Shown here: piece after piece, positions 14,971 through 30,879 of the stretch | How the letters are laid out: each line of letters opens with the position of its first letter | Numbering within the stretch: position 1 is the first letter of the stretch | Sequence record: MZ574432.2 | Reading direction: 5' to 3' (one strand) | DNA length: 64,000 nucleotides | Made by a program: the position numbers and the translations under genes | Notes under the pieces: model-generated | What the model was told of the DNA's origin: nothing | Seen by the model: only the letters and a program-made list of their open reading frames with translations | Database searches by the model: none

Positions 14971-14972
14971 TC

Positions 14973-15116
14973 ATGACCAGCCTGCAACGCGCCGGCTACG
15001 AGGCCCAGCGCGCTGGCGTCAAGTGGTGGCACAACCCGCACCCGTCGGGCTCCCCCGCCGCCTATCAATGGGACGAGGGCCACACCTTCGCCCGCCGTTC
15101 GATCACCCCCGTCTAG
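14973..15116 (+). CDS. Rmf/CrpP-like small protein (47 aa), copy 1
   Basis: GYEAQRAG..NPHP..QWDEG pattern resembles the RMF GY.AG..G..CPY..W..GW pattern. Confidence 0.55.
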   Translation: MTSLQRAGYEAQRAGVKWWHNPHPSGSPAAYQWDEGHTFARRSITPV

Positions 15117-15128
15117 GAAAGGCCACCC

Positions 15129-15425
15129 ATGACCGAAGAACCGATTCGCCTGCGGGCCGAGCCCGCCAACATGACCACCGTCGCCGTGGGCGGGGTGCTG
15201 CTGTACTTCTCATATCTGACCCTGGTGGGCTTCCGCTGCCCGCGCCTGGGGACCGTCGTCAACCCCGAGGGCCGGGCCAAGTCCAAGACCACCGCCGCCC
15301 ACATGACCCACTTTGGCCTCAACGCGCCGGGAACGGGTCAATGCAGCACTGAAGAAGACTTTCAGACCCTGGCCATGGGCGCGGTCATGGGTTCGAGCGG
15401 CCCTGATCACCTGTTGCTCAACTAA
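15129..15425 (+). CDS. hypothetical protein (98 aa), copy 1
   Basis: ORF with SD. Confidence 0.75.
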   Translation: MTEEPIRLRAEPANMTTVAVGGVLLYFSYLTLVGFRCPRLGTVVNPEGRAKSKTTAAHMTHFGLNAPGTGQCSTEEDFQTLAMGAVMGSSGPDHLLLN

Positions 15426-15426
15426 C

Positions 15427-15570
15427 ATGACCAGCCTGCAACGCGCCGGCTACGAGGCCCAGCGCGCTGGCGTCAAGTGGTGGCACAACCCGCACCCGTC
15501 GGGCTCCCCCGCCGCCTATCAATGGGACGAGGGCCACACCTTCGCCCGCCGTTCGATCACCCCCGTCTAG
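15427..15570 (+). CDS. Rmf/CrpP-like small protein, copy 2
   Basis: Identical to 14973-15116. Confidence 0.55.
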   Translation: MTSLQRAGYEAQRAGVKWWHNPHPSGSPAAYQWDEGHTFARRSITPV

Positions 15571-15582
15571 GAAAGGCCACCC

Positions 15583-15879
15583 ATGACCGAAGAACCGATT
15601 CGCCTGCGGGCCGAGCCCGCCAACATGACCACCGTCGCCGTGGGCGGGGTGCTGCTGTACTTCTCATATCTGACCCTGGTGGGCTTCCGCTGCCCGCGCC
15701 TGGGGACCGTCGTCAACCCCGAGGGCCGGGCCAAGTCCAAGACCACCGCCGCCCACATGACCCACTTTGGCCTCAACGCGCCGGGAACGGGTCAATGCAG
15801 CACTGAAGAAGACTTTCAGACCCTGGCCATGGGCGCGGTCATGGGTTCGAGCGGCCCTGATCACCTGTTGCTCAACTAA
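15583..15879 (+). CDS. hypothetical protein (98 aa), copy 2
   Basis: Identical to 15129-15425. Confidence 0.75.
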   Translation: MTEEPIRLRAEPANMTTVAVGGVLLYFSYLTLVGFRCPRLGTVVNPEGRAKSKTTAAHMTHFGLNAPGTGQCSTEEDFQTLAMGAVMGSSGPDHLLLN

Positions 15880-16403: not shown

Positions 16404-16572
16404 AGGGCCTGGAGCGATCCGGGCCTTTTTCGCGCCGGCCAGCGTTAACCTTAACGCGCGCTTAAGGTTAACCCCGCCCGGACCGTTTTTCGTTTTGGCT
16501 GTCGGGCGGGATTTCGTTTTGTCTGTCGAGTGCAAGAAAGCTGTTGACACGCATCGCAGCCCCATGCGACAA
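16404..16572 (+). promoter_or_regulatory. cassette control element
   Basis: Terminator with the same core as that at 13210 (GGGCCTGGAGCGATCCGGGCCTTTT); GTTAACCTTAACGCGCGCTTAAGGTTAAC; promoter motif. Confidence 0.8.
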
Positions 16573-16600
16573 AGGCTCATCACCAACGGAGGCCTTTTTC

Positions 16601-16900
16601 ATGGCCAGCTACGAGATCACCATTTCGGTTGACGTGTCGGTCGAGGACATCGAACTCCTTTACGCCGCCGCCCTGGCCCGCGCCAAGCAAGAGGGTCAAC
16701 CCGACGACAACGCCGTCGCCCTGCTGACCAATAGCGACCCGCTGGGCCGCCCTGACGTGCCGTCCTGCCTCATGATGCTGTTCGATCCGGGCGTGAGCCC
16801 TGACGGCACCTCGATCAACAACACCGCCGCCAAGCGCGCGGAGTACGACGAGGACGAGGACATGGACGCCTACGAGGAATCCCTGGAGGACGACAAGTGA
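16601..16900 (+). CDS. early hypothetical protein (99 aa, acidic tail)
   Basis: Start MASYEIT after GGAGG. Confidence 0.8.
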   Translation: MASYEITISVDVSVEDIELLYAAALARAKQEGQPDDNAVALLTNSDPLGRPDVPSCLMMLFDPGVSPDGTSINNTAAKRAEYDEDEDMDAYEESLEDDK

Positions 16901-17517: not shown

Positions 17518-18096
17518 ATGACCCGCGATTTCGTTCCGCACGTCATCACCGCCCGCACCATCGACGGCGCCTGCTATTTCATCGGCGGCCAGTCCTATGG
17601 CGATCACCTGGGCCACGCCCGCGTCATGACCAAGGATGACGCCGAACGCCGCGTCGGCGCCCTCCAGCGCCTGGAGCGCGCCAGCGCCGCGACCCGCCGC
17701 GCCAACGACCCCCATGAGGACGACTTTTCGGGCGTCTATGGCCTCGCCGTCGTGGCCACGACCTGGGAAGCCCTGGACAAGGCCGCCGAGGCGGTCAAGA
17801 CCTGGGAAGAGGCCGACCTTGCCGCCGAGGAGGCTCACGACGCCCTTTATGACGACTATGACCCGAACGAGGGCATGAGCGCCGAGGAGATCGCCGCCGA
17901 AAGCGCGTGGTGGCGCGAGCAGATGGCCAAGGACCAGCCTTTCGCCCCTGGCCAGTCGGTGACCATCACCGATGAGCTTCACCCCGACCACGGCGCCAGC
18001 GCCCGCGTCGTCGAAGCCGAGCAATCGGGCTATCTGGTGCTTGCCCTGGGCGAGCGCCTGACCTGGGGCTTGGCCAAGGGCGTGGCCGCCGCCTAA
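17518..18096 (+). CDS. early hypothetical protein (192 aa)
   Basis: Start MTRDFVP after GGAG. Confidence 0.75.
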   Translation: MTRDFVPHVITARTIDGACYFIGGQSYGDHLGHARVMTKDDAERRVGALQRLERASAATRRANDPHEDDFSGVYGLAVVATTWEALDKAAEAVKTWEEADLAAEEAHDALYDDYDPNEGMSAEEIAAESAWWREQMAKDQPFAPGQSVTITDELHPDHGASARVVEAEQSGYLVLALGERLTWGLAKGVAAA

Positions 18097-21581: not shown

Positions 21582-21722
21582 AGGCCCGCCTCACCGGCGG
21601 GCCTTTTTCTCGCCAGCCCACGTTAACCTTAACGCCGCGTTAGGGTTAACGGCGGGCCGGTTTTCGTTAACCAAAGAAAATGCAAGAAACCTGTTGACTG
21701 ACATCTTGGTCCTATGCGACAA
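21582..21722 (+). promoter_or_regulatory. cassette control element
   Basis: GGCCCGCC..GGCGGGCC-T5; GTTAACCTTAACGCCGCGTTAGGGTTAAC; promoter motif. Confidence 0.8.
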
Positions 21723-21749
21723 AGGCTCATCACCAACGGGAACGCTCCC

Positions 21750-22148
21750 ATGACCCAAGACCTGACCACCGAAGAACGCAACGCCAAGCGCGCCGAAATG
21801 GCCGATCACTGGCGCGAGCAACTCAAGGTCGCCCAGGCTCGCCTTGACATGACCGTGCTGGTCGGCAAGGGCTTTATCTGCGCCCTGGAACGCGATCAAT
21901 CGATGGCGATCCGCGCCGATGGTCCCGACCGCTATCGCCTGTGGCCGGTGTCGGCGCACCTGACCCACCTCCTCCACTTCACCAAGCTTGACGCCATGCG
22001 GACCGCCGCCCATTGGAACGCGGGCCTCCCCGACGACAAGCAAGACCTGCGAGTGAGCGCCATCCACTACCGCGACGCGCTCAAAACCTTCGTGGAAGTG
22101 GCCAAGTCGCAAATCGCCTGGATCGAAGGCGGCTGCAAGGCGGCCTGA
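21750..22148 (+). CDS. early hypothetical protein (132 aa), copy 1
   Basis: Start MTQDLTTEE. Confidence 0.8.
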   Translation: MTQDLTTEERNAKRAEMADHWREQLKVAQARLDMTVLVGKGFICALERDQSMAIRADGPDRYRLWPVSAHLTHLLHFTKLDAMRTAAHWNAGLPDDKQDLRVSAIHYRDALKTFVEVAKSQIAWIEGGCKAA

Positions 22149-22177
22149 TCTTGACGCCCTCCGGCTCCGGCCGGAGG

Positions 22178-22336
22178 GTTAATTTTTGGCCAGCCTGCAT
22201 TAACCTTAACGCGCAACCGTTCTCAGGTTAACCTTAACGTGAAAACGGTTGCAGGTTAACCTTAACCCCGCCTGCCCAGGCCTTAACCAAACCACGTGAG
22301 AAAACTGTTGACTCGCATCTAGGCCCCATGCGACAA
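22178..22336 (+). promoter_or_regulatory. cassette control element with multiple TTAACCTTAAC motifs
   Basis: Three (A/G)TTAACCTTAAC copies plus promoter motif; repeated at 23607-23765. Confidence 0.75.
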
Positions 22337-22364
22337 GGTGACATCGACAACCGGAGGCCCTTCC

Positions 22365-23021
22365 ATGGCCAGCCCTGAAGACATCGCCACCGTCCAAGCC
22401 GCCGCCGTCTCTTTCGACCTGGAAGCGTGGGAAGCGGAAAAAGGCGAGTATGCCGAGGCTCATTGGCGGTATCTGAACCCCGCCTTTGAAATCGAGACCT
22501 ATTCGCACATGTTCAGCCAAGCCGAACGCGACGCCGCGCGCCGTCTCATCGAAGAATATGAGACCGCCCAGACCGATCATCAAGGCACCTATGTTGACGA
22601 AAGCGCCGCGCTCATCGCCAGCGCCGACGCCTTCACCCGCCAATATATCGCCAGCGCGGTTTGGACCGGCGTCGAGTTGCCCTATGGCGACGACCGCGCC
22701 GACAGCGGCGGCGCCTATGACCTCGAAGAGGATTCGATCATCCCCGCCACGCTGCGCGACATGATCGAAGATTGCGCCACCTTCCAACGCGACAACGCCG
22801 ACACCCTGGCCAAGGCCTATGAGTCGGACGTGTATATTCAAGGCGAGCGCTACAACGCCAGCAACGCGGGGCACGATTTTTGGCTGACCCGCAACGGCCA
22901 TGGCGCGGGCTTTTGGGATCGCGGCCTAGAAGAGGTCGGCGAGGCCCTGACCAAGGCCTGCAAGGCGTTCGGGGAATACTATCTCGCCATGAGCGACAAC
23001 GGCGAAATCTCCAAGATGTGA
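22365..23021 (+). CDS. conserved phage protein (218 aa), copy 1
   Basis: AGHDFWLTRNGHGAGFWDR motif. Confidence 0.8.
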   Translation: MASPEDIATVQAAAVSFDLEAWEAEKGEYAEAHWRYLNPAFEIETYSHMFSQAERDAARRLIEEYETAQTDHQGTYVDESAALIASADAFTRQYIASAVWTGVELPYGDDRADSGGAYDLEEDSIIPATLRDMIEDCATFQRDNADTLAKAYESDVYIQGERYNASNAGHDFWLTRNGHGAGFWDRGLEEVGEALTKACKAFGEYYLAMSDNGEISKM

Positions 23022-23178
23022 CGATCAAGGCCCGCGCTTGACGCGGGCCTTTTTCTGCCCCGTCCGGGTTAACCTTAACGCCGGGCGACTTTCCGTTAAC
23101 CGAAGAAAATGCAAGAAACCTGTTGACTCGCATCTTGGTCCTATGCGACAAAGGCTCATCACCAACGGGAACGCTCCC

Positions 23179-23577
23179 ATGACCCAAGACCTGACCACCG
23201 AAGAACGCAACGCCAAGCGCGCCGAAATGGCCGATCACTGGCGCGAGCAACTCAAGGTCGCCCAGGCTCGCCTTGACATGACCGTGCTGGTCGGCAAGGG
23301 CTTTATCTGCGCCCTGGAACGCGATCAATCGATGGCGATCCGCGCCGATGGTCCCGACCGCTATCGCCTGTGGCCGGTGTCGGCGCACCTGACCCACCTC
23401 CTCCACTTCACCAAGCTTGACGCCATGCGGACCGCCGCCCATTGGAACGCGGGCCTCCCCGACGACAAGCAAGACCTGCGAGTGAGCGCCATCCACTACC
23501 GCGACGCGCTCAAAACCTTCGTGGAAGTGGCCAAGTCGCAAATCGCCTGGATCGAAGGCGGCTGCAAGGCGGCCTGA
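23179..23577 (+). CDS. early hypothetical protein (132 aa), copy 2
   Basis: Identical to 21750-22148. Confidence 0.8.
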   Translation: MTQDLTTEERNAKRAEMADHWREQLKVAQARLDMTVLVGKGFICALERDQSMAIRADGPDRYRLWPVSAHLTHLLHFTKLDAMRTAAHWNAGLPDDKQDLRVSAIHYRDALKTFVEVAKSQIAWIEGGCKAA

Positions 23578-23793
23578 TCTTGACGCCCTCCGGCTCCGGC
23601 CGGAGGGTTAATTTTTGGCCAGCCTGCATTAACCTTAACGCGCAACCGTTCTCAGGTTAACCTTAACGTGAAAACGGTTGCAGGTTAACCTTAACCCCGC
23701 CTGCCCAGGCCTTAACCAAACCACGTGAGAAAACTGTTGACTCGCATCTAGGCCCCATGCGACAAGGTGACATCGACAACCGGAGGCCCTTCC

Positions 23794-24450
23794 ATGGCCA
23801 GCCCTGAAGACATCGCCACCGTCCAAGCCGCCGCCGTCTCTTTCGACCTGGAAGCGTGGGAAGCGGAAAAAGGCGAGTATGCCGAGGCTCATTGGCGGTA
23901 TCTGAACCCCGCCTTTGAAATCGAGACCTATTCGCACATGTTCAGCCAAGCCGAACGCGACGCCGCGCGCCGTCTCATCGAAGAATATGAGACCGCCCAG
24001 ACCGATCATCAAGGCACCTATGTTGACGAAAGCGCCGCGCTCATCGCCAGCGCCGACGCCTTCACCCGCCAATATATCGCCAGCGCGGTTTGGACCGGCG
24101 TCGAGTTGCCCTATGGCGACGACCGCGCCGACAGCGGCGGCGCCTATGACCTCGAAGAGGATTCGATCATCCCCGCCACGCTGCGCGACATGATCGAAGA
24201 TTGCGCCACCTTCCAACGCGACAACGCCGACACCCTGGCCAAGGCCTATGAGTCGGACGTGTATATTCAAGGCGAGCGCTACAACGCCAGCAACGCGGGG
24301 CACGATTTTTGGCTGACCCGCAACGGCCATGGCGCGGGCTTTTGGGATCGCGGCCTAGAAGAGGTCGGCGAGGCCCTGACCAAGGCCTGCAAGGCGTTCG
24401 GGGAATACTATCTCGCCATGAGCGACAACGGCGAAATCTCCAAGATGTGA
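23794..24450 (+). CDS. conserved phage protein (218 aa), copy 2
   Basis: Identical to 22365-23021. Confidence 0.8.
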   Translation: MASPEDIATVQAAAVSFDLEAWEAEKGEYAEAHWRYLNPAFEIETYSHMFSQAERDAARRLIEEYETAQTDHQGTYVDESAALIASADAFTRQYIASAVWTGVELPYGDDRADSGGAYDLEEDSIIPATLRDMIEDCATFQRDNADTLAKAYESDVYIQGERYNASNAGHDFWLTRNGHGAGFWDRGLEEVGEALTKACKAFGEYYLAMSDNGEISKM

Positions 24451-24454
24451 CGAT

Positions 24455-24579
24455 CAAGGCCCGCGCTTGACGCGGGCCTTTTTCTGCCCCGTCCGGGTTA
24501 ACCTTAACGCCGGGCGACTTTCCGTTAACCGAAGAAAATGCAAGAAACCTGTTGACTCGCATCTTCGTTATATGCGAAC
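24455..24579 (+). promoter_or_regulatory. cassette control element
   Basis: GGCCCGCG..CGCGGGCC-T5; GGTTAACCTTAAC; promoter variant TTGACTCGCAT..TATGCGAAC. Confidence 0.75.
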
Positions 24580-25263: not shown

Positions 25264-25365
25264 GGCGCGCCCTGGCCAGCGAAAAAAAGTGCCGTCAACG
25301 CAAGAAAGGCGTTGACGGCATAATCGCTATATGCGACAAAGGCTCATCGGCAACGGAGACACGCC

Positions 25366-25560
25366 ATGACCTTCCACCACAACCTGATGAGCAAGCTGGA
25401 CGCGGCCCAAATGGCGGGCGAAATGACCTACGCCCAACACGCCGACATGCGCGCCACGCTGCGGGCCTCCAACATGCGCGGTCAAGTCTTCACCTCGATG
25501 GATGAACTGCGCAAGGCCTGCAAGGGCGCCGGTCGCGACTTCCAAGGCCGGTTCGCCTAA
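25366..25560 (+). CDS. gene A (64 aa), copy 1
   Basis: MTFHHNLMSK; GGAG SD. Confidence 0.8.
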   Translation: MTFHHNLMSKLDAAQMAGEMTYAQHADMRATLRASNMRGQVFTSMDELRKACKGAGRDFQGRFA

Positions 25561-25580
25561 GACCCCCTCCCCTGAGAGGC

Positions 25581-25766
25581 CCGCCCTAGAGGCGGGCTTT
25601 TTCTTGGCCGTTAGCCTCTCGTTAAGGTTAATCCCCAGGCCCTCTGGGGTTAACCTTAACGCGGCGTTAAGGTTAACCCCGGCGGCCCAGGCCTTAACCA
25701 TGGCAAGGAAAAAAGATCGCTTTCCTGCGAGAAAGCTGTTGACCGCATAAAGGCAATATGCGACAA
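25581..25766 (+). promoter_or_regulatory. terminator + CtrA-like boxes + promoter (recurs in each 885-bp unit)
   Basis: GCCCGCC..GGCGGGC-T5; perfect GGGGTTAACCTTAAC-GCGGC-GTTAAGGTTAACCCC palindrome; promoter motif. Confidence 0.85.
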
Positions 25767-25790
25767 AGGGTCATCAACGGAGCTAGTCCA

Positions 25791-25961
25791 ATGTCCTTCC
25801 GCCTCGCCCTTACCGAAGACGCCCGCTTCACCGCCGCCCGTGGCGCGGTCCGCACCGTCCGCGAGCAAGCCCGCCCGGCGCCGCACAAGGACATTGACGG
25901 CAAGGCCCTGCTGGCGCCCGCCTCGGCGCTGGACCGCATCCGCGCCGTTCTCGGGAACTGA
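25791..25961 (+). CDS. gene B (56 aa), copy 1
   Basis: Start MSFRLAL after GGAG. Confidence 0.7.
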   Translation: MSFRLALTEDARFTAARGAVRTVREQARPAPHKDIDGKALLAPASALDRIRAVLGN

Positions 25962-25964
25962 GTC

Positions 25965-26156
25965 ATGAAGGTCATCGCGCACTATGCCAACGGCCTGCAA
26001 CGGGTCATCCCCTGCGAGACCTCGCAAGAGGCTGTGGCCGCGATCAAGGCGGCTCTGACCTATGATCGCGCCGCCAAGTTCACGCTTGACAAGCGCCTTG
26101 CCTCGGCGATCCCGACCCGCGCCGCCTCCGAACGGGTTTGGCTGTTGAGCGCGTGA
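25965..26156 (+). CDS. gene C (63 aa), copy 1
   Basis: ORF directly after gene B. Confidence 0.7.
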   Translation: MKVIAHYANGLQRVIPCETSQEAVAAIKAALTYDRAAKFTLDKRLASAIPTRAASERVWLLSA

Positions 26157-26250
26157 GGGCGATCGAAAAAAGATCGCCTCACCGCAAAAAACCTGTTGAC
26201 TCGCATAAGGCCCCTATGCGATAAAAGGTCATCGGCAACGGAGACACGCC

Positions 26251-26445
26251 ATGACCTTCCACCACAACCTGATGAGCAAGCTGGACGCGGCCCAAATGGC
26301 GGGCGAAATGACCTACGCCCAACACGCCGACATGCGCGCCACGCTGCGGGCCTCCAACATGCGCGGTCAAGTCTTCACCTCGATGGATGAACTGCGCAAG
26401 GCCTGCAAGGGCGCCGGTCGCGACTTCCAAGGCCGGTTCGCCTAA
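26251..26445 (+). CDS. gene A, copy 2
   Basis: Identical translation. Confidence 0.8.
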   Translation: MTFHHNLMSKLDAAQMAGEMTYAQHADMRATLRASNMRGQVFTSMDELRKACKGAGRDFQGRFA

Positions 26446-26674
26446 GACCCCTCCCCTGAGAGGCCCGCCCTAGAGGCGGGCTTTTTCTTGGCCGTTAGCC
26501 TCTCGTTAAGGTTAATCCCCAGGCCCTCTGGGGTTAACCTTAACGCGGCGTTAAGGTTAACCCCGGCGGCCCAGGCCTTAACCATGGCAAGGAAAAAAGA
26601 TCGCTTTCCTGCGAGAAAGCTGTTGACCGCATAAAGGCAATATGCGACAAAGGGTCATCAACGGAGCTAGTCCA

Positions 26675-26845
26675 ATGTCCTTCCGCCTCGCCCTTACCGA
26701 AGACGCCCGCTTCACCGCCGCCCGTGGCGCGGTCCGCACCGTCCGCGAGCAAGCCCGCCCGGCGCCGCACAAGGACATTGACGGCAAGGCCCTGCTGGCG
26801 CCCGCCTCGGCGCTGGACCGCATCCGCGCCGTTCTCGGGAACTGA
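26675..26845 (+). CDS. gene B, copy 2
   Basis: Identical translation. Confidence 0.7.
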   Translation: MSFRLALTEDARFTAARGAVRTVREQARPAPHKDIDGKALLAPASALDRIRAVLGN

Positions 26846-26848
26846 GTC

Positions 26849-27040
26849 ATGAAGGTCATCGCGCACTATGCCAACGGCCTGCAACGGGTCATCCCCTGCG
26901 AGACCTCGCAAGAGGCTGTGGCCGCGATCAAGGCGGCTCTGACCTATGATCGCGCCGCCAAGTTCACGCTTGACAAGCGCCTTGCCTCGGCGATCCCGAC
27001 CCGCGCCGCCTCCGAACGGGTTTGGCTGTTGAGCGCGTGA
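26849..27040 (+). CDS. gene C, copy 2
   Basis: Identical translation. Confidence 0.7.
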   Translation: MKVIAHYANGLQRVIPCETSQEAVAAIKAALTYDRAAKFTLDKRLASAIPTRAASERVWLLSA

Positions 27041-27134
27041 GGGCGATCGAAAAAAGATCGCCTCACCGCAAAAAACCTGTTGACTCGCATAAGGCCCCTA
27101 TGCGATAAAAGGTCATCGGCAACGGAGACACGCC

Positions 27135-27329
27135 ATGACCTTCCACCACAACCTGATGAGCAAGCTGGACGCGGCCCAAATGGCGGGCGAAATGACCTAC
27201 GCCCAACACGCCGACATGCGCGCCACGCTGCGGGCCTCCAACATGCGCGGTCAAGTCTTCACCTCGATGGATGAACTGCGCAAGGCCTGCAAGGGCGCCG
27301 GTCGCGACTTCCAAGGCCGGTTCGCCTAA
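27135..27329 (+). CDS. gene A, copy 3
   Basis: Identical translation. Confidence 0.8.
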   Translation: MTFHHNLMSKLDAAQMAGEMTYAQHADMRATLRASNMRGQVFTSMDELRKACKGAGRDFQGRFA

Positions 27330-27559
27330 GACCCCCTCCCCTGAGAGGCCCGCCCTAGAGGCGGGCTTTTTCTTGGCCGTTAGCCTCTCGTTAAGGTTAA
27401 TCCCCAGGCCCTCTGGGGTTAACCTTAACGCGGCGTTAAGGTTAACCCCGGCGGCCCAGGCCTTAACCATGGCAAGGAAAAAAGATCGCTTTCCTGCGAG
27501 AAAGCTGTTGACCGCATAAAGGCAATATGCGACAAAGGGTCATCAACGGAGCTAGTCCA

Positions 27560-27730
27560 ATGTCCTTCCGCCTCGCCCTTACCGAAGACGCCCGCTTCAC
27601 CGCCGCCCGTGGCGCGGTCCGCACCGTCCGCGAGCAAGCCCGCCCGGCGCCGCACAAGGACATTGACGGCAAGGCCCTGCTGGCGCCCGCCTCGGCGCTG
27701 GACCGCATCCGCGCCGTTCTCGGGAACTGA
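27560..27730 (+). CDS. gene B, copy 3
   Basis: Identical translation. Confidence 0.7.
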   Translation: MSFRLALTEDARFTAARGAVRTVREQARPAPHKDIDGKALLAPASALDRIRAVLGN

Positions 27731-27733
27731 GTC

Positions 27734-27925
27734 ATGAAGGTCATCGCGCACTATGCCAACGGCCTGCAACGGGTCATCCCCTGCGAGACCTCGCAAGAGG
27801 CTGTGGCCGCGATCAAGGCGGCTCTGACCTATGATCGCGCCGCCAAGTTCACGCTTGACAAGCGCCTTGCCTCGGCGATCCCGACCCGCGCCGCCTCCGA
27901 ACGGGTTTGGCTGTTGAGCGCGTGA
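27734..27925 (+). CDS. gene C, copy 3
   Basis: Identical translation. Confidence 0.7.
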   Translation: MKVIAHYANGLQRVIPCETSQEAVAAIKAALTYDRAAKFTLDKRLASAIPTRAASERVWLLSA

Positions 27926-28019
27926 GGGCGATCGAAAAAAGATCGCCTCACCGCAAAAAACCTGTTGACTCGCATAAGGCCCCTATGCGATAAAAGGTCA
28001 TCGGCAACGGAGACACGCC

Positions 28020-28214
28020 ATGACCTTCCACCACAACCTGATGAGCAAGCTGGACGCGGCCCAAATGGCGGGCGAAATGACCTACGCCCAACACGCCGAC
28101 ATGCGCGCCACGCTGCGGGCCTCCAACATGCGCGGTCAAGTCTTCACCTCGATGGATGAACTGCGCAAGGCCTGCAAGGGCGCCGGTCGCGACTTCCAAG
28201 GCCGGTTCGCCTAA
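28020..28214 (+). CDS. gene A, copy 4
   Basis: Identical translation. Confidence 0.8.
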   Translation: MTFHHNLMSKLDAAQMAGEMTYAQHADMRATLRASNMRGQVFTSMDELRKACKGAGRDFQGRFA

Positions 28215-28444
28215 GACCCCCTCCCCTGAGAGGCCCGCCCTAGAGGCGGGCTTTTTCTTGGCCGTTAGCCTCTCGTTAAGGTTAATCCCCAGGCCCTCTG
28301 GGGTTAACCTTAACGCGGCGTTAAGGTTAACCCCGGCGGCCCAGGCCTTAACCATGGCAAGGAAAAAAGATCGCTTTCCTGCGAGAAAGCTGTTGACCGC
28401 ATAAAGGCAATATGCGACAAAGGGTCATCAACGGAGCTAGTCCA

Positions 28445-28615
28445 ATGTCCTTCCGCCTCGCCCTTACCGAAGACGCCCGCTTCACCGCCGCCCGTGGCGC
28501 GGTCCGCACCGTCCGCGAGCAAGCCCGCCCGGCGCCGCACAAGGACATTGACGGCAAGGCCCTGCTGGCGCCCGCCTCGGCGCTGGACCGCATCCGCGCC
28601 GTTCTCGGGAACTGA
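28445..28615 (+). CDS. gene B, copy 4
   Basis: Identical translation. Confidence 0.7.
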   Translation: MSFRLALTEDARFTAARGAVRTVREQARPAPHKDIDGKALLAPASALDRIRAVLGN

Positions 28616-28618
28616 GTC

Positions 28619-28810
28619 ATGAAGGTCATCGCGCACTATGCCAACGGCCTGCAACGGGTCATCCCCTGCGAGACCTCGCAAGAGGCTGTGGCCGCGATCA
28701 AGGCGGCTCTGACCTATGATCGCGCCGCCAAGTTCACGCTTGACAAGCGCCTTGCCTCGGCGATCCCGACCCGCGCCGCCTCCGAACGGGTTTGGCTGTT
28801 GAGCGCGTGA
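28619..28810 (+). CDS. gene C, copy 4
   Basis: Identical translation. Confidence 0.7.
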   Translation: MKVIAHYANGLQRVIPCETSQEAVAAIKAALTYDRAAKFTLDKRLASAIPTRAASERVWLLSA

Positions 28811-28904
28811 GGGCGATCGAAAAAAGATCGCCTCACCGCAAAAAACCTGTTGACTCGCATAAGGCCCCTATGCGATAAAAGGTCATCGGCAACGGAGACA
28901 CGCC

Positions 28905-29099
28905 ATGACCTTCCACCACAACCTGATGAGCAAGCTGGACGCGGCCCAAATGGCGGGCGAAATGACCTACGCCCAACACGCCGACATGCGCGCCACGCTG
29001 CGGGCCTCCAACATGCGCGGTCAAGTCTTCACCTCGATGGATGAACTGCGCAAGGCCTGCAAGGGCGCCGGTCGCGACTTCCAAGGCCGGTTCGCCTAA
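28905..29099 (+). CDS. gene A, copy 5
   Basis: Identical translation. Confidence 0.8.
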   Translation: MTFHHNLMSKLDAAQMAGEMTYAQHADMRATLRASNMRGQVFTSMDELRKACKGAGRDFQGRFA

Positions 29100-29329
29100 G
29101 ACCCCCTCCCCTGAGAGGCCCGCCCTAGAGGCGGGCTTTTTCTTGGCCGTTAGCCTCTCGTTAAGGTTAATCCCCAGGCCCTCTGGGGTTAACCTTAACG
29201 CGGCGTTAAGGTTAACCCCGGCGGCCCAGGCCTTAACCATGGCAAGGAAAAAAGATCGCTTTCCTGCGAGAAAGCTGTTGACCGCATAAAGGCAATATGC
29301 GACAAAGGGTCATCAACGGAGCTAGTCCA

Positions 29330-29500
29330 ATGTCCTTCCGCCTCGCCCTTACCGAAGACGCCCGCTTCACCGCCGCCCGTGGCGCGGTCCGCACCGTCCG
29401 CGAGCAAGCCCGCCCGGCGCCGCACAAGGACATTGACGGCAAGGCCCTGCTGGCGCCCGCCTCGGCGCTGGACCGCATCCGCGCCGTTCTCGGGAACTGA
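29330..29500 (+). CDS. gene B, copy 5
   Basis: Identical translation. Confidence 0.7.
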   Translation: MSFRLALTEDARFTAARGAVRTVREQARPAPHKDIDGKALLAPASALDRIRAVLGN

Positions 29501-29503
29501 GTC

Positions 29504-29695
29504 ATGAAGGTCATCGCGCACTATGCCAACGGCCTGCAACGGGTCATCCCCTGCGAGACCTCGCAAGAGGCTGTGGCCGCGATCAAGGCGGCTCTGACCT
29601 ATGATCGCGCCGCCAAGTTCACGCTTGACAAGCGCCTTGCCTCGGCGATCCCGACCCGCGCCGCCTCCGAACGGGTTTGGCTGTTGAGCGCGTGA
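29504..29695 (+). CDS. gene C, copy 5
   Basis: Identical translation. Confidence 0.7.
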   Translation: MKVIAHYANGLQRVIPCETSQEAVAAIKAALTYDRAAKFTLDKRLASAIPTRAASERVWLLSA

Positions 29696-29789
29696 GGGCG
29701 ATCGAAAAAAGATCGCCTCACCGCAAAAAACCTGTTGACTCGCATAAGGCCCCTATGCGATAAAAGGTCATCGGCAACGGAGACACGCC

Positions 29790-29984
29790 ATGACCTTCCA
29801 CCACACCATGATGAGCAAGCTGGACGCGGCGATGATGTCGGGCGAACTGACCTACGCGCAACACAGCGACATGCGCGCGGCCCTCCGCGCCGCCAACATG
29901 AGCGGCCAAGTCTTCACCTCGATGAACGAGCTTCGCGCCGCTTGCAAGGGCGCGGGTCGCGACTTCCAAGGCCGGTTCGCTTAA
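29790..29984 (+). CDS. gene A' (64 aa), diverged paralogue of gene A
   Basis: MTFHHTMMSKLDAAMMSGELT.. versus MTFHHNLMSKLDAAQMAGEMT.. Confidence 0.8.
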   Translation: MTFHHTMMSKLDAAMMSGELTYAQHSDMRAALRAANMSGQVFTSMNELRAACKGAGRDFQGRFA

Positions 29985-30008
29985 GAGCCGGCAACCTTAC
30001 TGACCAGA

Positions 30009-30034
30009 GCCCGCCCTTCGAGGCGGGCTTTTTC
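30009..30034 (+). terminator. intrinsic terminator ending the early array
   Basis: AGCCCGCC-CTTCGA-GGCGGGCT-TTTT. Confidence 0.8.
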
Positions 30035-30039
30035 GTGCG

Positions 30040-30540
30040 CGCCGCTAAGGGAGGCTCCAAGGCCGGCGCCCAGGCCGGTATGACCATAAGAAGGTTCCAA
30101 GAAAGTATGGCCCTACCCAAAGGGTCCAGGGACCCAAGGCCGGGGTTTGTTGCATTTCTGCAACAGGCCCCTCAGGCGCCTCTGAATCACATTGAAAAAT
30201 CCAGATACCAAAGGTCTCTGAAAATCGAAGGCCCTGTTTTTCCGGCCGGCGATCGCCTAAATCCAGGACCCCTGTCTCTAAAAATTTTATAAAAAATTCA
30301 AGCACTTGGAAAGGGGTCCCTGTTTTCCGGCAGGGTAAAAATAATTCTCAAGTACCACTTCTAAAAATTTTTTATAAAAATGCAGCTTTAGGTAAAGTAC
30401 CCCTATAAGTTGCATATCCGGCCATTTGCCGGACATTTGCCGGACATGTCCAGCGCGCACCAGTATCAATGAATTCAAAGGCTTAGGTGAAAAGCTGGAC
30501 ATTTGCCGGACATCATCCGGCCAAATCCGGCCAGAGCCCC
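30040..30540. other. AT-rich non-coding boundary with short repeats
   Basis: A/T tracts TCTAAAAATTTT..ATAAAAA twice, CCCTGTTTTCCGGC twice, GGACATTTGCC repeats. Confidence 0.65.
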
Positions 30541-30546
30541 ACAACC

Positions 30547-30879
30547 TTAGCGGATGACACCCGAGGTCATCAGGTCCTGGCAGGCGTCTTCGACCGGCGG
30601 CGCGGCGGTATAGGCCTGGGTGTGATCGCGCATCGACAGCGCCGGCAGGGCGTCCAGATAGAGGCGATTGAACCGCGCGGCCTTGAGCATGTAGTCCTGG
30701 GTGAGCGCCGCGCGCCCGACAGTGCCGGCTGGCGCCTCGCAGACCTTGAGCGCTGCGTCCATCCACTGGCGCTGGGCCAGATTGAGCGCCTCGATCTGGC
30801 GATTGTGACGATCCCACGGCGTGGCCAGTATCACGACCACGACGATGACGCCAAAGAGGATCACGGAAAGGCGCATCAT
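30547..30879 (-). CDS. membrane-anchored hypothetical protein (~110 aa)
   Basis: N-terminal hydrophobic helix; ATGA coupling. Confidence 0.7.
   Translation of the reverse strand: MMRLSVILFGVIVVVVILATPWDRHNRQIEALNLAQRQWMDAALKVCEAPAGTVGRAALTQDYMLKAARFNRLYLDALPALSMRDHTQAYTAAPPVEDACQDLMTSGVIR

Follow-up and report, generated by a model that had tools for sequence, protein, structure and literature searches.

A five-unit tandem gene array in the direct terminal repeat of Caulobacter phage BL47 and its probable origin by recent recombination

Phage and locus

The DNA analysed here, called the window, comprises bases 1-64,000 of the record of Caulobacter phage BL47 (MZ574432.2), and window and record coordinates are the same. 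Phage BL47 belongs to the genus Bertelyvirus, has a genome of 326,794 bp and has C. vibrioides CB15 as its host. The direct terminal repeat (DTR) annotated in the record spans positions 1-30174 on the plus strand (30,174 bp), and its second copy forms the right genome end. Direct comparison showed the two copies to be letter-identical in the record. A tandem array of three small genes, designated A, B and C, sits at the inner edge of the left DTR and is closed by a paralogue of A, designated A'. The twin of the array at the right end stops 407 bp short of the physical end of the genome. Because the array lies inside the DTR it is doubled in each genome, and A, B and C are present in 10 copies per genome (5 per DTR), versus 2 in the sister phages described below. 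No paper on BL47 or on the array was found in a literature search, and one may exist beyond the literature covered.

Structure of the array

The array extends on the plus strand from position 25344 to 29767, and the start-to-start spacing of the repeats gives five units of 885, 884, 885, 885 and 885 bp. Counted from 25344, units 1, 3, 4 and 5 are 100% identical over 885 bases. Alignment of the units left a single difference, a run of four C at 26448-26451 in unit 2, just past the stop codon of A, where the other units have five. The length of 884 bp in unit 2 is due to this missing C. The copy number of five is the figure of the deposited assembly. Tandem Repeats Finder, run with a longest period of 500, missed the array since this limit lies below the unit size. 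Chance repetition is not an issue for a pattern of this kind.

Each unit consists, in order, of a promoter cassette, gene A, a hairpin with a U-run, a cluster of TTAA half-sites, an A-tract with a second promoter cassette, genes B and C, and a hairpin that lacks a U-run. Gene A encodes 64 amino acids (25366-25560, with identical copies at 26251-26445, 27135-27329, 28020-28214 and 28905-29099), gene B 56 amino acids (25791-25961, with copies at 26675-26845, 27560-27730, 28445-28615 and 29330-29500) and gene C 63 amino acids (25965-26156, with copies at 26849-27040, 27734-27925, 28619-28810 and 29504-29695). All are on the plus strand, and B and C are three bases apart. The array is closed on the same strand by A' with its native promoter (29735-29984, coding sequence 29790-29984), followed by a predicted terminator at 30006-30034.

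The first copy of A has its own promoter cassette on the plus strand (25312-25342), read from the sequence as TTGACG (25312-25317) ... GCGACAAAGG (25333-25342). Copies 2-5 have the same upstream sequence as A', with TTGACT ... GCGATAAAAGG. The A and A' promoters differ at 18 positions between -59 and -23. The last base that separates them is at -23 of the ATG, and the first difference between the coding sequences of A and A' is at +16. These mismatches bound a 38-bp block, made up of the ribosome-binding site and the first five codons, that is identical in all six genes (25344-25381 on the plus strand in the first copy of A, 29768-29805 in A'). The hybrid junction, in which the A' promoter is joined to the A coding sequence, lies at 26196-26266 on the plus strand and recurs in identical form with starts at 27080, 27965 and 28850. 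Each BL47 DTR contains four occurrences of a 50-mer from the hybrid junction, which is the same at each internal repeat boundary. The 38-bp block was not found in any environmental contig searched. The marks of a gene accordion, namely head-to-tail copies of several genes, an identical novel junction and homology at that junction, are all present. An earlier note on this DNA, made from the letters alone, had described five units of 885/884/885/885/885 bp ending in A', a native promoter before copy 1 with the A' promoter fused to A in copies 2-5, and a switch inside the 38-bp block shared by A and A'. Repeat spacing and unit alignment confirmed the lengths to the base, the alignment of the upstream regions confirmed the fusion, and the bounds at -23 and +16 place the switch where the note had put it.

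Sister phages, ancestry and age

Six sister phages were compared (J4, C2, RB23, C1, OP620777 and OP620778), whose unique DNA next to the DTR is 99.7-100% identical to that of BL47; the five whose records were read originate from the same creek. The genomes of J4, C2 and RB23, which were read directly, each carry one A, B, C and A', in that order. For C1, OP620777 and OP620778 copy counts only were taken, and these gave 4, 2 and 2 places per genome for the A family, B and C, versus 12, 10 and 10 in BL47. Deleting units 2-5 from the BL47 sequence leaves DNA that is colinear with each of J4, C2 and RB23, with an identity of 98.8-99.3%. The hybrid-junction 50-mer is absent from J4, C2 and RB23, the three genomes searched for it directly, and both parental junctions are present there once each. 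Identity between BL47 and J4 is 99.5% at 1-15.4 kb and 98.8% at 15.4-23.1 kb of the DTR, and 100.0% at 30.5-45 kb and 99.8% at 45-64 kb of the adjacent unique DNA.

No substitution separates the BL47 copies over 4 x 885 bp, the homopolymer indel in unit 2 being the only change. Over this part of the DTR, BL47 has diverged from its sisters at about 1% of positions, and the BL47-specific substitutions within the unit occur in all five copies. The lack of substitutions between copies shows that the amplification is recent and, set against the divergence of about 1%, that it took place long after BL47 and its sisters split. The earlier note had derived the array from an ancestral A-B-C-A' arrangement by unequal crossover and had called the amplification recent. 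The derivation is well supported by the single-copy sisters, the colinearity of the collapsed BL47 sequence and the restriction of the hybrid junction to BL47, and the identity of the copies bears out the recent date.

Genes A and A' are identical at 166 of 195 nucleotides and, by direct count on the translations, at 53 of 64 amino acids (11 residues differ), about 85% overall. In CcrSC and CcrBL9, species further removed from BL47, the gene order is X-B-C-A', where X encodes a 54-amino acid protein unrelated to A, and the A' of BL47 has CcrSC gp046 and CcrBL9 gp044 as its positional orthologues. A, A' and CcrBL9 gp044 are about equidistant, with 23-35 differences per 195 nucleotides. Judged from these distances and gene orders, the A/A' pair is older than the seven sister phages (BL47 and the six others), yet not genus-wide. 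The description of A and A' in the earlier note as old paralogues thus holds within the BL47 species and fails beyond it, since CcrSC and CcrBL9 carry an unrelated gene at the position of A. The annotated DTR boundary shifts within the A-B-C-A' region; it lies at the end of C in C2, inside C in CcrBL9, and after A' in J4, BL47 and CcrSC.

Other duplications and genome length

Two further tandem duplications are present in the DTR of BL47. The first, of 454 bp x2 at 14972-15879, has identical copies that contain two small genes (144 and 297 nucleotides). Its unit begins one base ahead of a start codon and ends with a stop codon, and its junction has no homology. The second, of 1429 bp x2 at 21635-24577, contains a 132-amino acid gene and the 'Pham177' gene, with 0 differences over 1344 bp. 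The promoter at its junction (23123-23148) combines parts of both flanking cassettes. These parental cassettes share 26 identical bases, followed by two differing and six more identical ones, and the exchange falls in the 6-base window beside the 26 identical bases. Both segments are single in J4, C2 and RB23. Piecewise self-comparison of the whole BL47 genome found no further direct repeat of at least 150 bp in the 266-kb unique part.

All three tandem duplications therefore lie in the DTR, which makes up 10% of the non-redundant genome; by our own calculation this has P ~0.001 under uniform placement. Three events out of three in the DTR mean that this region is either unusually prone to duplication, unusually tolerant of it, or the site where selection acts. 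Since the sisters lack the amplification, and the three that were read over this part of the DTR have no duplication at all, something in the lineage or history of BL47 must be special. Two further fresh duplications in the same DTR, with none in the other 266 kb, point to a cause that is at least partly region-wide and not gene-specific.

The BL47 genome is about 14.5 kb longer than that of J4, in line with the annotated repeats. Its unique part exceeds that of J4 by 3,554 bp, and BL47 shows no compensating deletion. A second array was considered as the source of these extra 3.5 kb of unique DNA and was ruled out by the self-comparison (no repeat of at least 150 bp). As no tandem or dispersed repeat of that size explains the difference, it must be due to unique insertions or deletions, in the part of the record beyond the window (64,001-296,620). 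An A+T-rich segment devoid of genes (30175-30560) starts exactly at the annotated end of the DTR, and the direction of transcription flips there. It contains short direct repeats, an 11-bp unit x2.7 (30418-30447) and pairs of 45-47 bp at 30277/30360 and 30408/30485, and is a candidate for a terminus, packaging site or origin region.

Promoters, terminators and coding constraint

The promoter cassettes of the array share the general form TTGAC-N2/3-CAT...ATGCGA-AAAGG. In its strict version (TTGAC-N3-CAT-N6-12-ATGCGA) the cassette, usually with AAAGG after it, is found at 16 places in the window, between 9860 and 29760, with 0 expected; all 16 are on the plus strand and within the DTR. The cassette of the B-C operon, TTGACC ... 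GCGACAAAGG, lies at 25739-25769 on the plus strand, was read from the sequence in every unit and is conserved across species. Housekeeping promoters of Caulobacter follow the pattern TTGaCgS-N10-14-GCtANAWC, and the cassette fits this pattern. A scan with the sigma-70 consensus found no promoter, because the cassettes follow the Caulobacter-type pattern and not TATAAT. With its host-type cassettes confined to it and all on the plus strand, the DTR has the appearance of an early gene block transcribed by the host. The cassettes contain an inverted repeat GCAT...ATGC between -35 and -10 that could be an operator, and most have an A-tract and TTAAC clusters in front.

A predicted intrinsic terminator, a G+C-rich hairpin with a U-run (25575-25603, plus strand, -21.4 kcal/mol), follows A in every unit and is kept in CcrSC and CcrBL9. 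The hairpin after C, found by folding, is at 26151-26185 on the plus strand. By these predicted signals every unit would be a complete expression module running from a host-sigma-type promoter to B-C. A further hairpin with a 13-bp stem (25289-25321, -24.1 kcal/mol, z -7.8) encloses the -35 element of the native A promoter. It has an A-run in front, and its minus strand reads as a terminator; a similar element of A-run plus hairpin precedes the B promoter in every unit. An Rfam scan of 21-31 kb found no RNA family.

When A, B and C are set against their orthologues in CcrSC and CcrBL9, third codon positions carry about twice the number of substitutions found at first or second positions. Both phages also retain the promoter, terminator and TTAA sites. 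The excess at third positions together with the conserved signals indicates that genes and signals are real. The substitution pattern marks A, B and C as genes under purifying selection.

CtrA-type sites

Sites of the form bound by the host regulator CtrA are concentrated in the DTR. A predicted CtrA-box cluster of 80 bp with seven TTAA half-sites is found at 25622-25701 on the plus strand and is repeated at 26506-26585, 27391-27470, 28276-28355 and 29161-29240. It contains a canonical TTAA-N7-TTAA box (25656-25670) and TTAACCAT (25694-25701), and is intergenic and near a promoter, between the terminator of A and the B promoter at 25739. In the window TTAA-N7-TTAA occurs 10 times (0.04 expected), always in the first 30 kb and five times in the array, once per unit. 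The 14 occurrences of TTAACCAT (0.25 expected) include five in the array, and 143 of the 157 TTAA in the window are within the DTR. The statement in the earlier note that each added unit also adds CtrA-like boxes is accordingly correct, at seven half-sites including one canonical box per unit. The half-sites of the cluster are conserved in CcrSC and CcrBL9.

Base 25656 is T in BL47, CcrSC and CcrBL9, and C in J4, C2 and RB23, where the change destroys the only canonical box of the cassette. A gain of this T in BL47 was considered and ruled out; since CcrSC and CcrBL9 share it, the T is the ancestral state, and J4, C2 and RB23 have lost it. The ancestral full box was thus kept and then multiplied in BL47, which has 10 full boxes per DTR versus 5 in J4. 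The differences between BL47 and its sisters concentrate in the 167-bp spacer between A and B, which holds 10 of the 17 differences within 24.4-25.8 kb. Another dense array of CtrA-type half-sites lies upstream of the promoter of the 'Pham177' gene, where a 28-bp unit x2.4, each unit with a TTAACCTTAAC pair, is present at 23629-23695 and 22200-22266. In phiCbK-like phages such sites are concentrated in the DTRs and are bound by CtrA (Mascolo et al., PMC9437464). CtrA binding and regulation were shown for phiCbK gp005 and gp018 and for two other phages, and two phiCbK DTR promoters need CtrA for activity (PMC9437464).

Proteins A, B and C

Searches of A, A', B and C against PHROGs, PADLOC and NCBIfam returned no meaningful match. 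For B and C, no homologue outside Bertelyvirus was found among 5.8 billion proteins, and both are absent from the contigs that bear distant homologues of A. The A family comprises seven close members, and about 20 distant ones were found among 1.84 billion representative proteins. Its invariant residues are H4, D12, G18, H25, R29, R33, M37 and G39. Two AlphaFold models (alignment depths 7 and 25) predict three helices for A, with a modest predicted local distance difference test (pLDDT) score of about 70. A Foldseek search of the models against PDB and BFVD returned the CcrPW homologue only, a profile search of A against PDB sequences gave chance-level matches only, and a Trans_reg_C DNA-binding domain was not found in A.

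Two distant relatives of A on phage-like metagenomic contigs, P0016 and P0021, combine an N-terminal winged-helix domain of the OmpR/PhoB type, without a receiver, with a C-terminal A-like domain. Fusion proteins of this kind, of 169-173 amino acids, are encoded on three such contigs (L013:1209-1718, L014:1374-1883 and L015:1124-1645). The N-terminal domain of P0016 and P0021, listed as Pfam PF00486, has the CtrA DNA-binding domain as its best NCBIfam match (E 5e-12, far below the curated full-length cut-off). In a tblastn search with P0021 the C-terminal part matched A of BL47, and the N-terminal part matched 'CtrA' regulators of Roseobacter phages. The contig of P0016 carries a DUF4055 portal-like gene. 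On L015 a canonical CtrA box lies about 240 bp upstream of the fusion gene, and a portal-like gene about 3 kb downstream.

As the A domain is fused to a CtrA-type domain elsewhere, A may, by Rosetta-stone logic, work together with a CtrA-type DNA-binding protein. No open reading frame for a CtrA-type winged-helix protein was found in the window, nor by tblastn in any Bertelyvirus genome, and host CtrA would therefore be a candidate partner of A. These fusions hint that A acts in CtrA-linked regulation. An A-family gene is located at or beside the inner DTR boundary in CcrColossus (16559-16714), CcrBL9 (22392-22589), C2 and BL47 (29790-29984); the A-family gene of CcrPW (17732-17887) is inside the annotated terminal repeat.

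Origin of the array

The array is probably a gene accordion, that is, a recent, recombination-driven tandem amplification specific to BL47. Its structure, junction, ancestry and recency can be read directly from the repeat alignments and the sister genomes. An ancestor with A-B-C-A' near the inner edge of the DTR would have undergone an unequal homologous exchange between A and A' within the 38-bp block, which would have given a second unit with the A' promoter driving A. Later unequal exchanges between perfect 885-bp repeats would then have led to five units. The minimum usually quoted for efficient homologous recombination is about 25 bp, which the 38-bp block exceeds. The copies would be expressed early by host RNA polymerase, raising both protein dosage and the load of CtrA sites. 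Several points weigh against this account. The number of five copies is an assembly figure, and the letter-identical DTR copies in the record may have been copied by the depositor. Expression of the copies, like any benefit from them, is putative. The same DTR also contains the fresh duplications of 454 and 1429 bp, so that the cause of the amplification may lie in the region or the lineage and not in any value of A, B or C.

A serious rival, though a doubtful one, is that neutral or size-driven duplications arose in a permissive, recombination-prone DTR, with the identity of A, B and C incidental; each DTR base counts twice in the packaged DNA, and two perfect copies expand quickly. The clustering of 454 bp x2, 1429 bp x2 and 885 bp x5 in the 30-kb DTR (P ~0.001 if uniform) is in favour of it, as are the three different kinds of junction at the three duplications and the fact that the DTR is the most diverged part between the sisters. 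The isolating laboratory also argued, for smaller Caulobacter phages, that the genome ends vary most and that size may outweigh sequence there (PMC11053796). However, J4, C2 and RB23 have no duplication in the DTR stretches compared, and the A/B/C counts of C1, OP620777 and OP620778 show no amplification of these genes; a high neutral rate fits poorly with such sisters. Moreover, A-B-C alone exceeded two copies, and a compensating deletion is absent, the unique part of BL47 being 3.5 kb longer than that of J4. It is similarly conceivable, without being probable, that dosage was selected, A, B or C inhibiting a host barrier stoichiometrically so that five copies supply enough protein early, as with T4 tifA or poxvirus K3L. 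The anatomy of the array is that of experimentally selected accordions (PMC9391042; PMC13096335), the genes are small and located in an early region with their own promoters in each unit, and the amplification is confined to one lineage. Yet no annotated family, whether related to defence or not, matches A, B or C, the sole functional lead for A is in transcription-factor biology and not in defence, and the two other duplications in the same DTR weaken a gene-specific argument. The earlier note had named dosage selection as the driver and had thought it probable that A, B or C acts against a host barrier. The first claim is not supported, as the other fresh DTR duplications suggest an at least partly region-wide cause, and neither is the second, family, defence and structural searches having given no match.

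The DNA itself might be the target, which is regarded as improbable; the CtrA-box cluster would then act in cis or sequester CtrA, and the three genes would be passengers. Each unit does bring seven TTAA half-sites including a full box and TTAACCAT, BL47 kept and multiplied a full box that was lost in J4, C2 and RB23 (10 versus 5 per DTR), and such sites are bound and regulated by CtrA in phiCbK (PMC9437464). CtrA binding at the BL47 sites would, however, be by analogy with phiCbK, the boundaries of the unit are set by the A/A' homology and not by the box cluster, and A, B and C, being under purifying selection, are not mere spacers. A related proposal, unlikely but slightly less so, joins gene and DNA. 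A would be a hitherto unrecognised small module of the CtrA circuit, fused in some related phages to a CtrA-type DNA-binding domain without a receiver and free-standing in BL47, where it may act on host CtrA or on CtrA-box DNA. The accordion would multiply modulator and box cluster together, retuning the coupling of the early programme, and of lytic deferment, to the cell cycle of the host. If true, this would be a natural case in which a regulatory circuit, and not an anti-defence gene, is adjusted by copy number. An assembly artefact, in which the true copy number is lower (e.g. two) or heterogeneous and was fixed at five by the assembler or the depositor, is likewise given little credence. 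The perfect identity of the copies, the single homopolymer-length change, which is typical of long-read consensus error, and the letter-identical left and right DTRs would fit an artefact. Against it, the reads must contain the new sequence formed at the hybrid junction, identical repeats are usually collapsed and not expanded by assemblers, the two other duplications in the record are equally clean, and the annotated repeats agree with a genome that exceeds that of J4 by 14.5 kb. A hybrid junction this clean and reciprocal speaks for a real duplication at the least. The preferred reading is a recent amplification by recombination, specific to BL47.

Comparison with known systems

Phage gene accordions are known mainly from laboratory selections, and BL47 represents one caught in a natural isolate, with near-identical single-copy sisters and a recombination history that is readable base by base. 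In phage T5 a long DTR forms the pre-early (first-step-transfer) region, whose small genes under host-type promoters act first. The long DTR of BL47, with small genes under predicted host-type promoters, resembles this arrangement by analogy only. Closer precedents are the amplification of dmd-tifA in phage T4 against toxIN (PMC9391042) and the K3L accordion of poxviruses, obtained by laboratory selection against PKR (Elde et al. 2012, via PMC9391042). As in the K3L case, so far as that secondary account goes, a small early segment of BL47 was amplified head-to-tail by recombination, with identical boundaries and recent, near-identical copies. Unlike K3L as outlined there, with its defined laboratory selection and known host target PKR, BL47 is a natural isolate, its founding exchange would have used a pre-existing pair of paralogues, and its array is doubled in the DTR. 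BL47 shares with T4 dmd-tifA that it is a phage with short tandem repeats of several genes formed by recombination (PMC9391042), and the SegB-promoted amplification reported for phage T6 likewise involves tandem multi-gene repeats of recombinational origin (PMC13096335). The T4 junctions, however, are microhomologies of 2-10 bp, whereas that of BL47 is a 38-bp block in paralogues of 85% identity, and headful packaging forces compensating deletions in T4 (PMC9391042), whereas BL47 shows none and its genome has become about 14.5 kb larger.

The phiCbK-like DTRs offer a second comparison. As in these, TTAA-N7-TTAA in BL47 is concentrated in the DTR, intergenic, upstream of promoters and beside small genes (PMC9437464). 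The paper on 'lytic deferment' in phiCbK-like phages notes that sites are gained and lost through rearrangements; tandem amplification of a box-carrying cassette, as seen in BL47, is not described in that paper, which omitted BL47 (PMC9437464). Grown in Caulobacter CB15/NA1000, BL47 provides a system for studying the adaptive value of early DTR copy number, and it also bears on the speed of array expansion and collapse and on hot spots of DTR duplication. The array further singles out three of the many orphan DTR genes for functional study, and it offers a lead from the conserved A family to transcription factors of the CtrA type. Among the systems compared, the BL47 array sets itself apart in being natural, founded on paralogues and doubled in the DTR, and in co-amplifying predicted binding sites of a host regulator.

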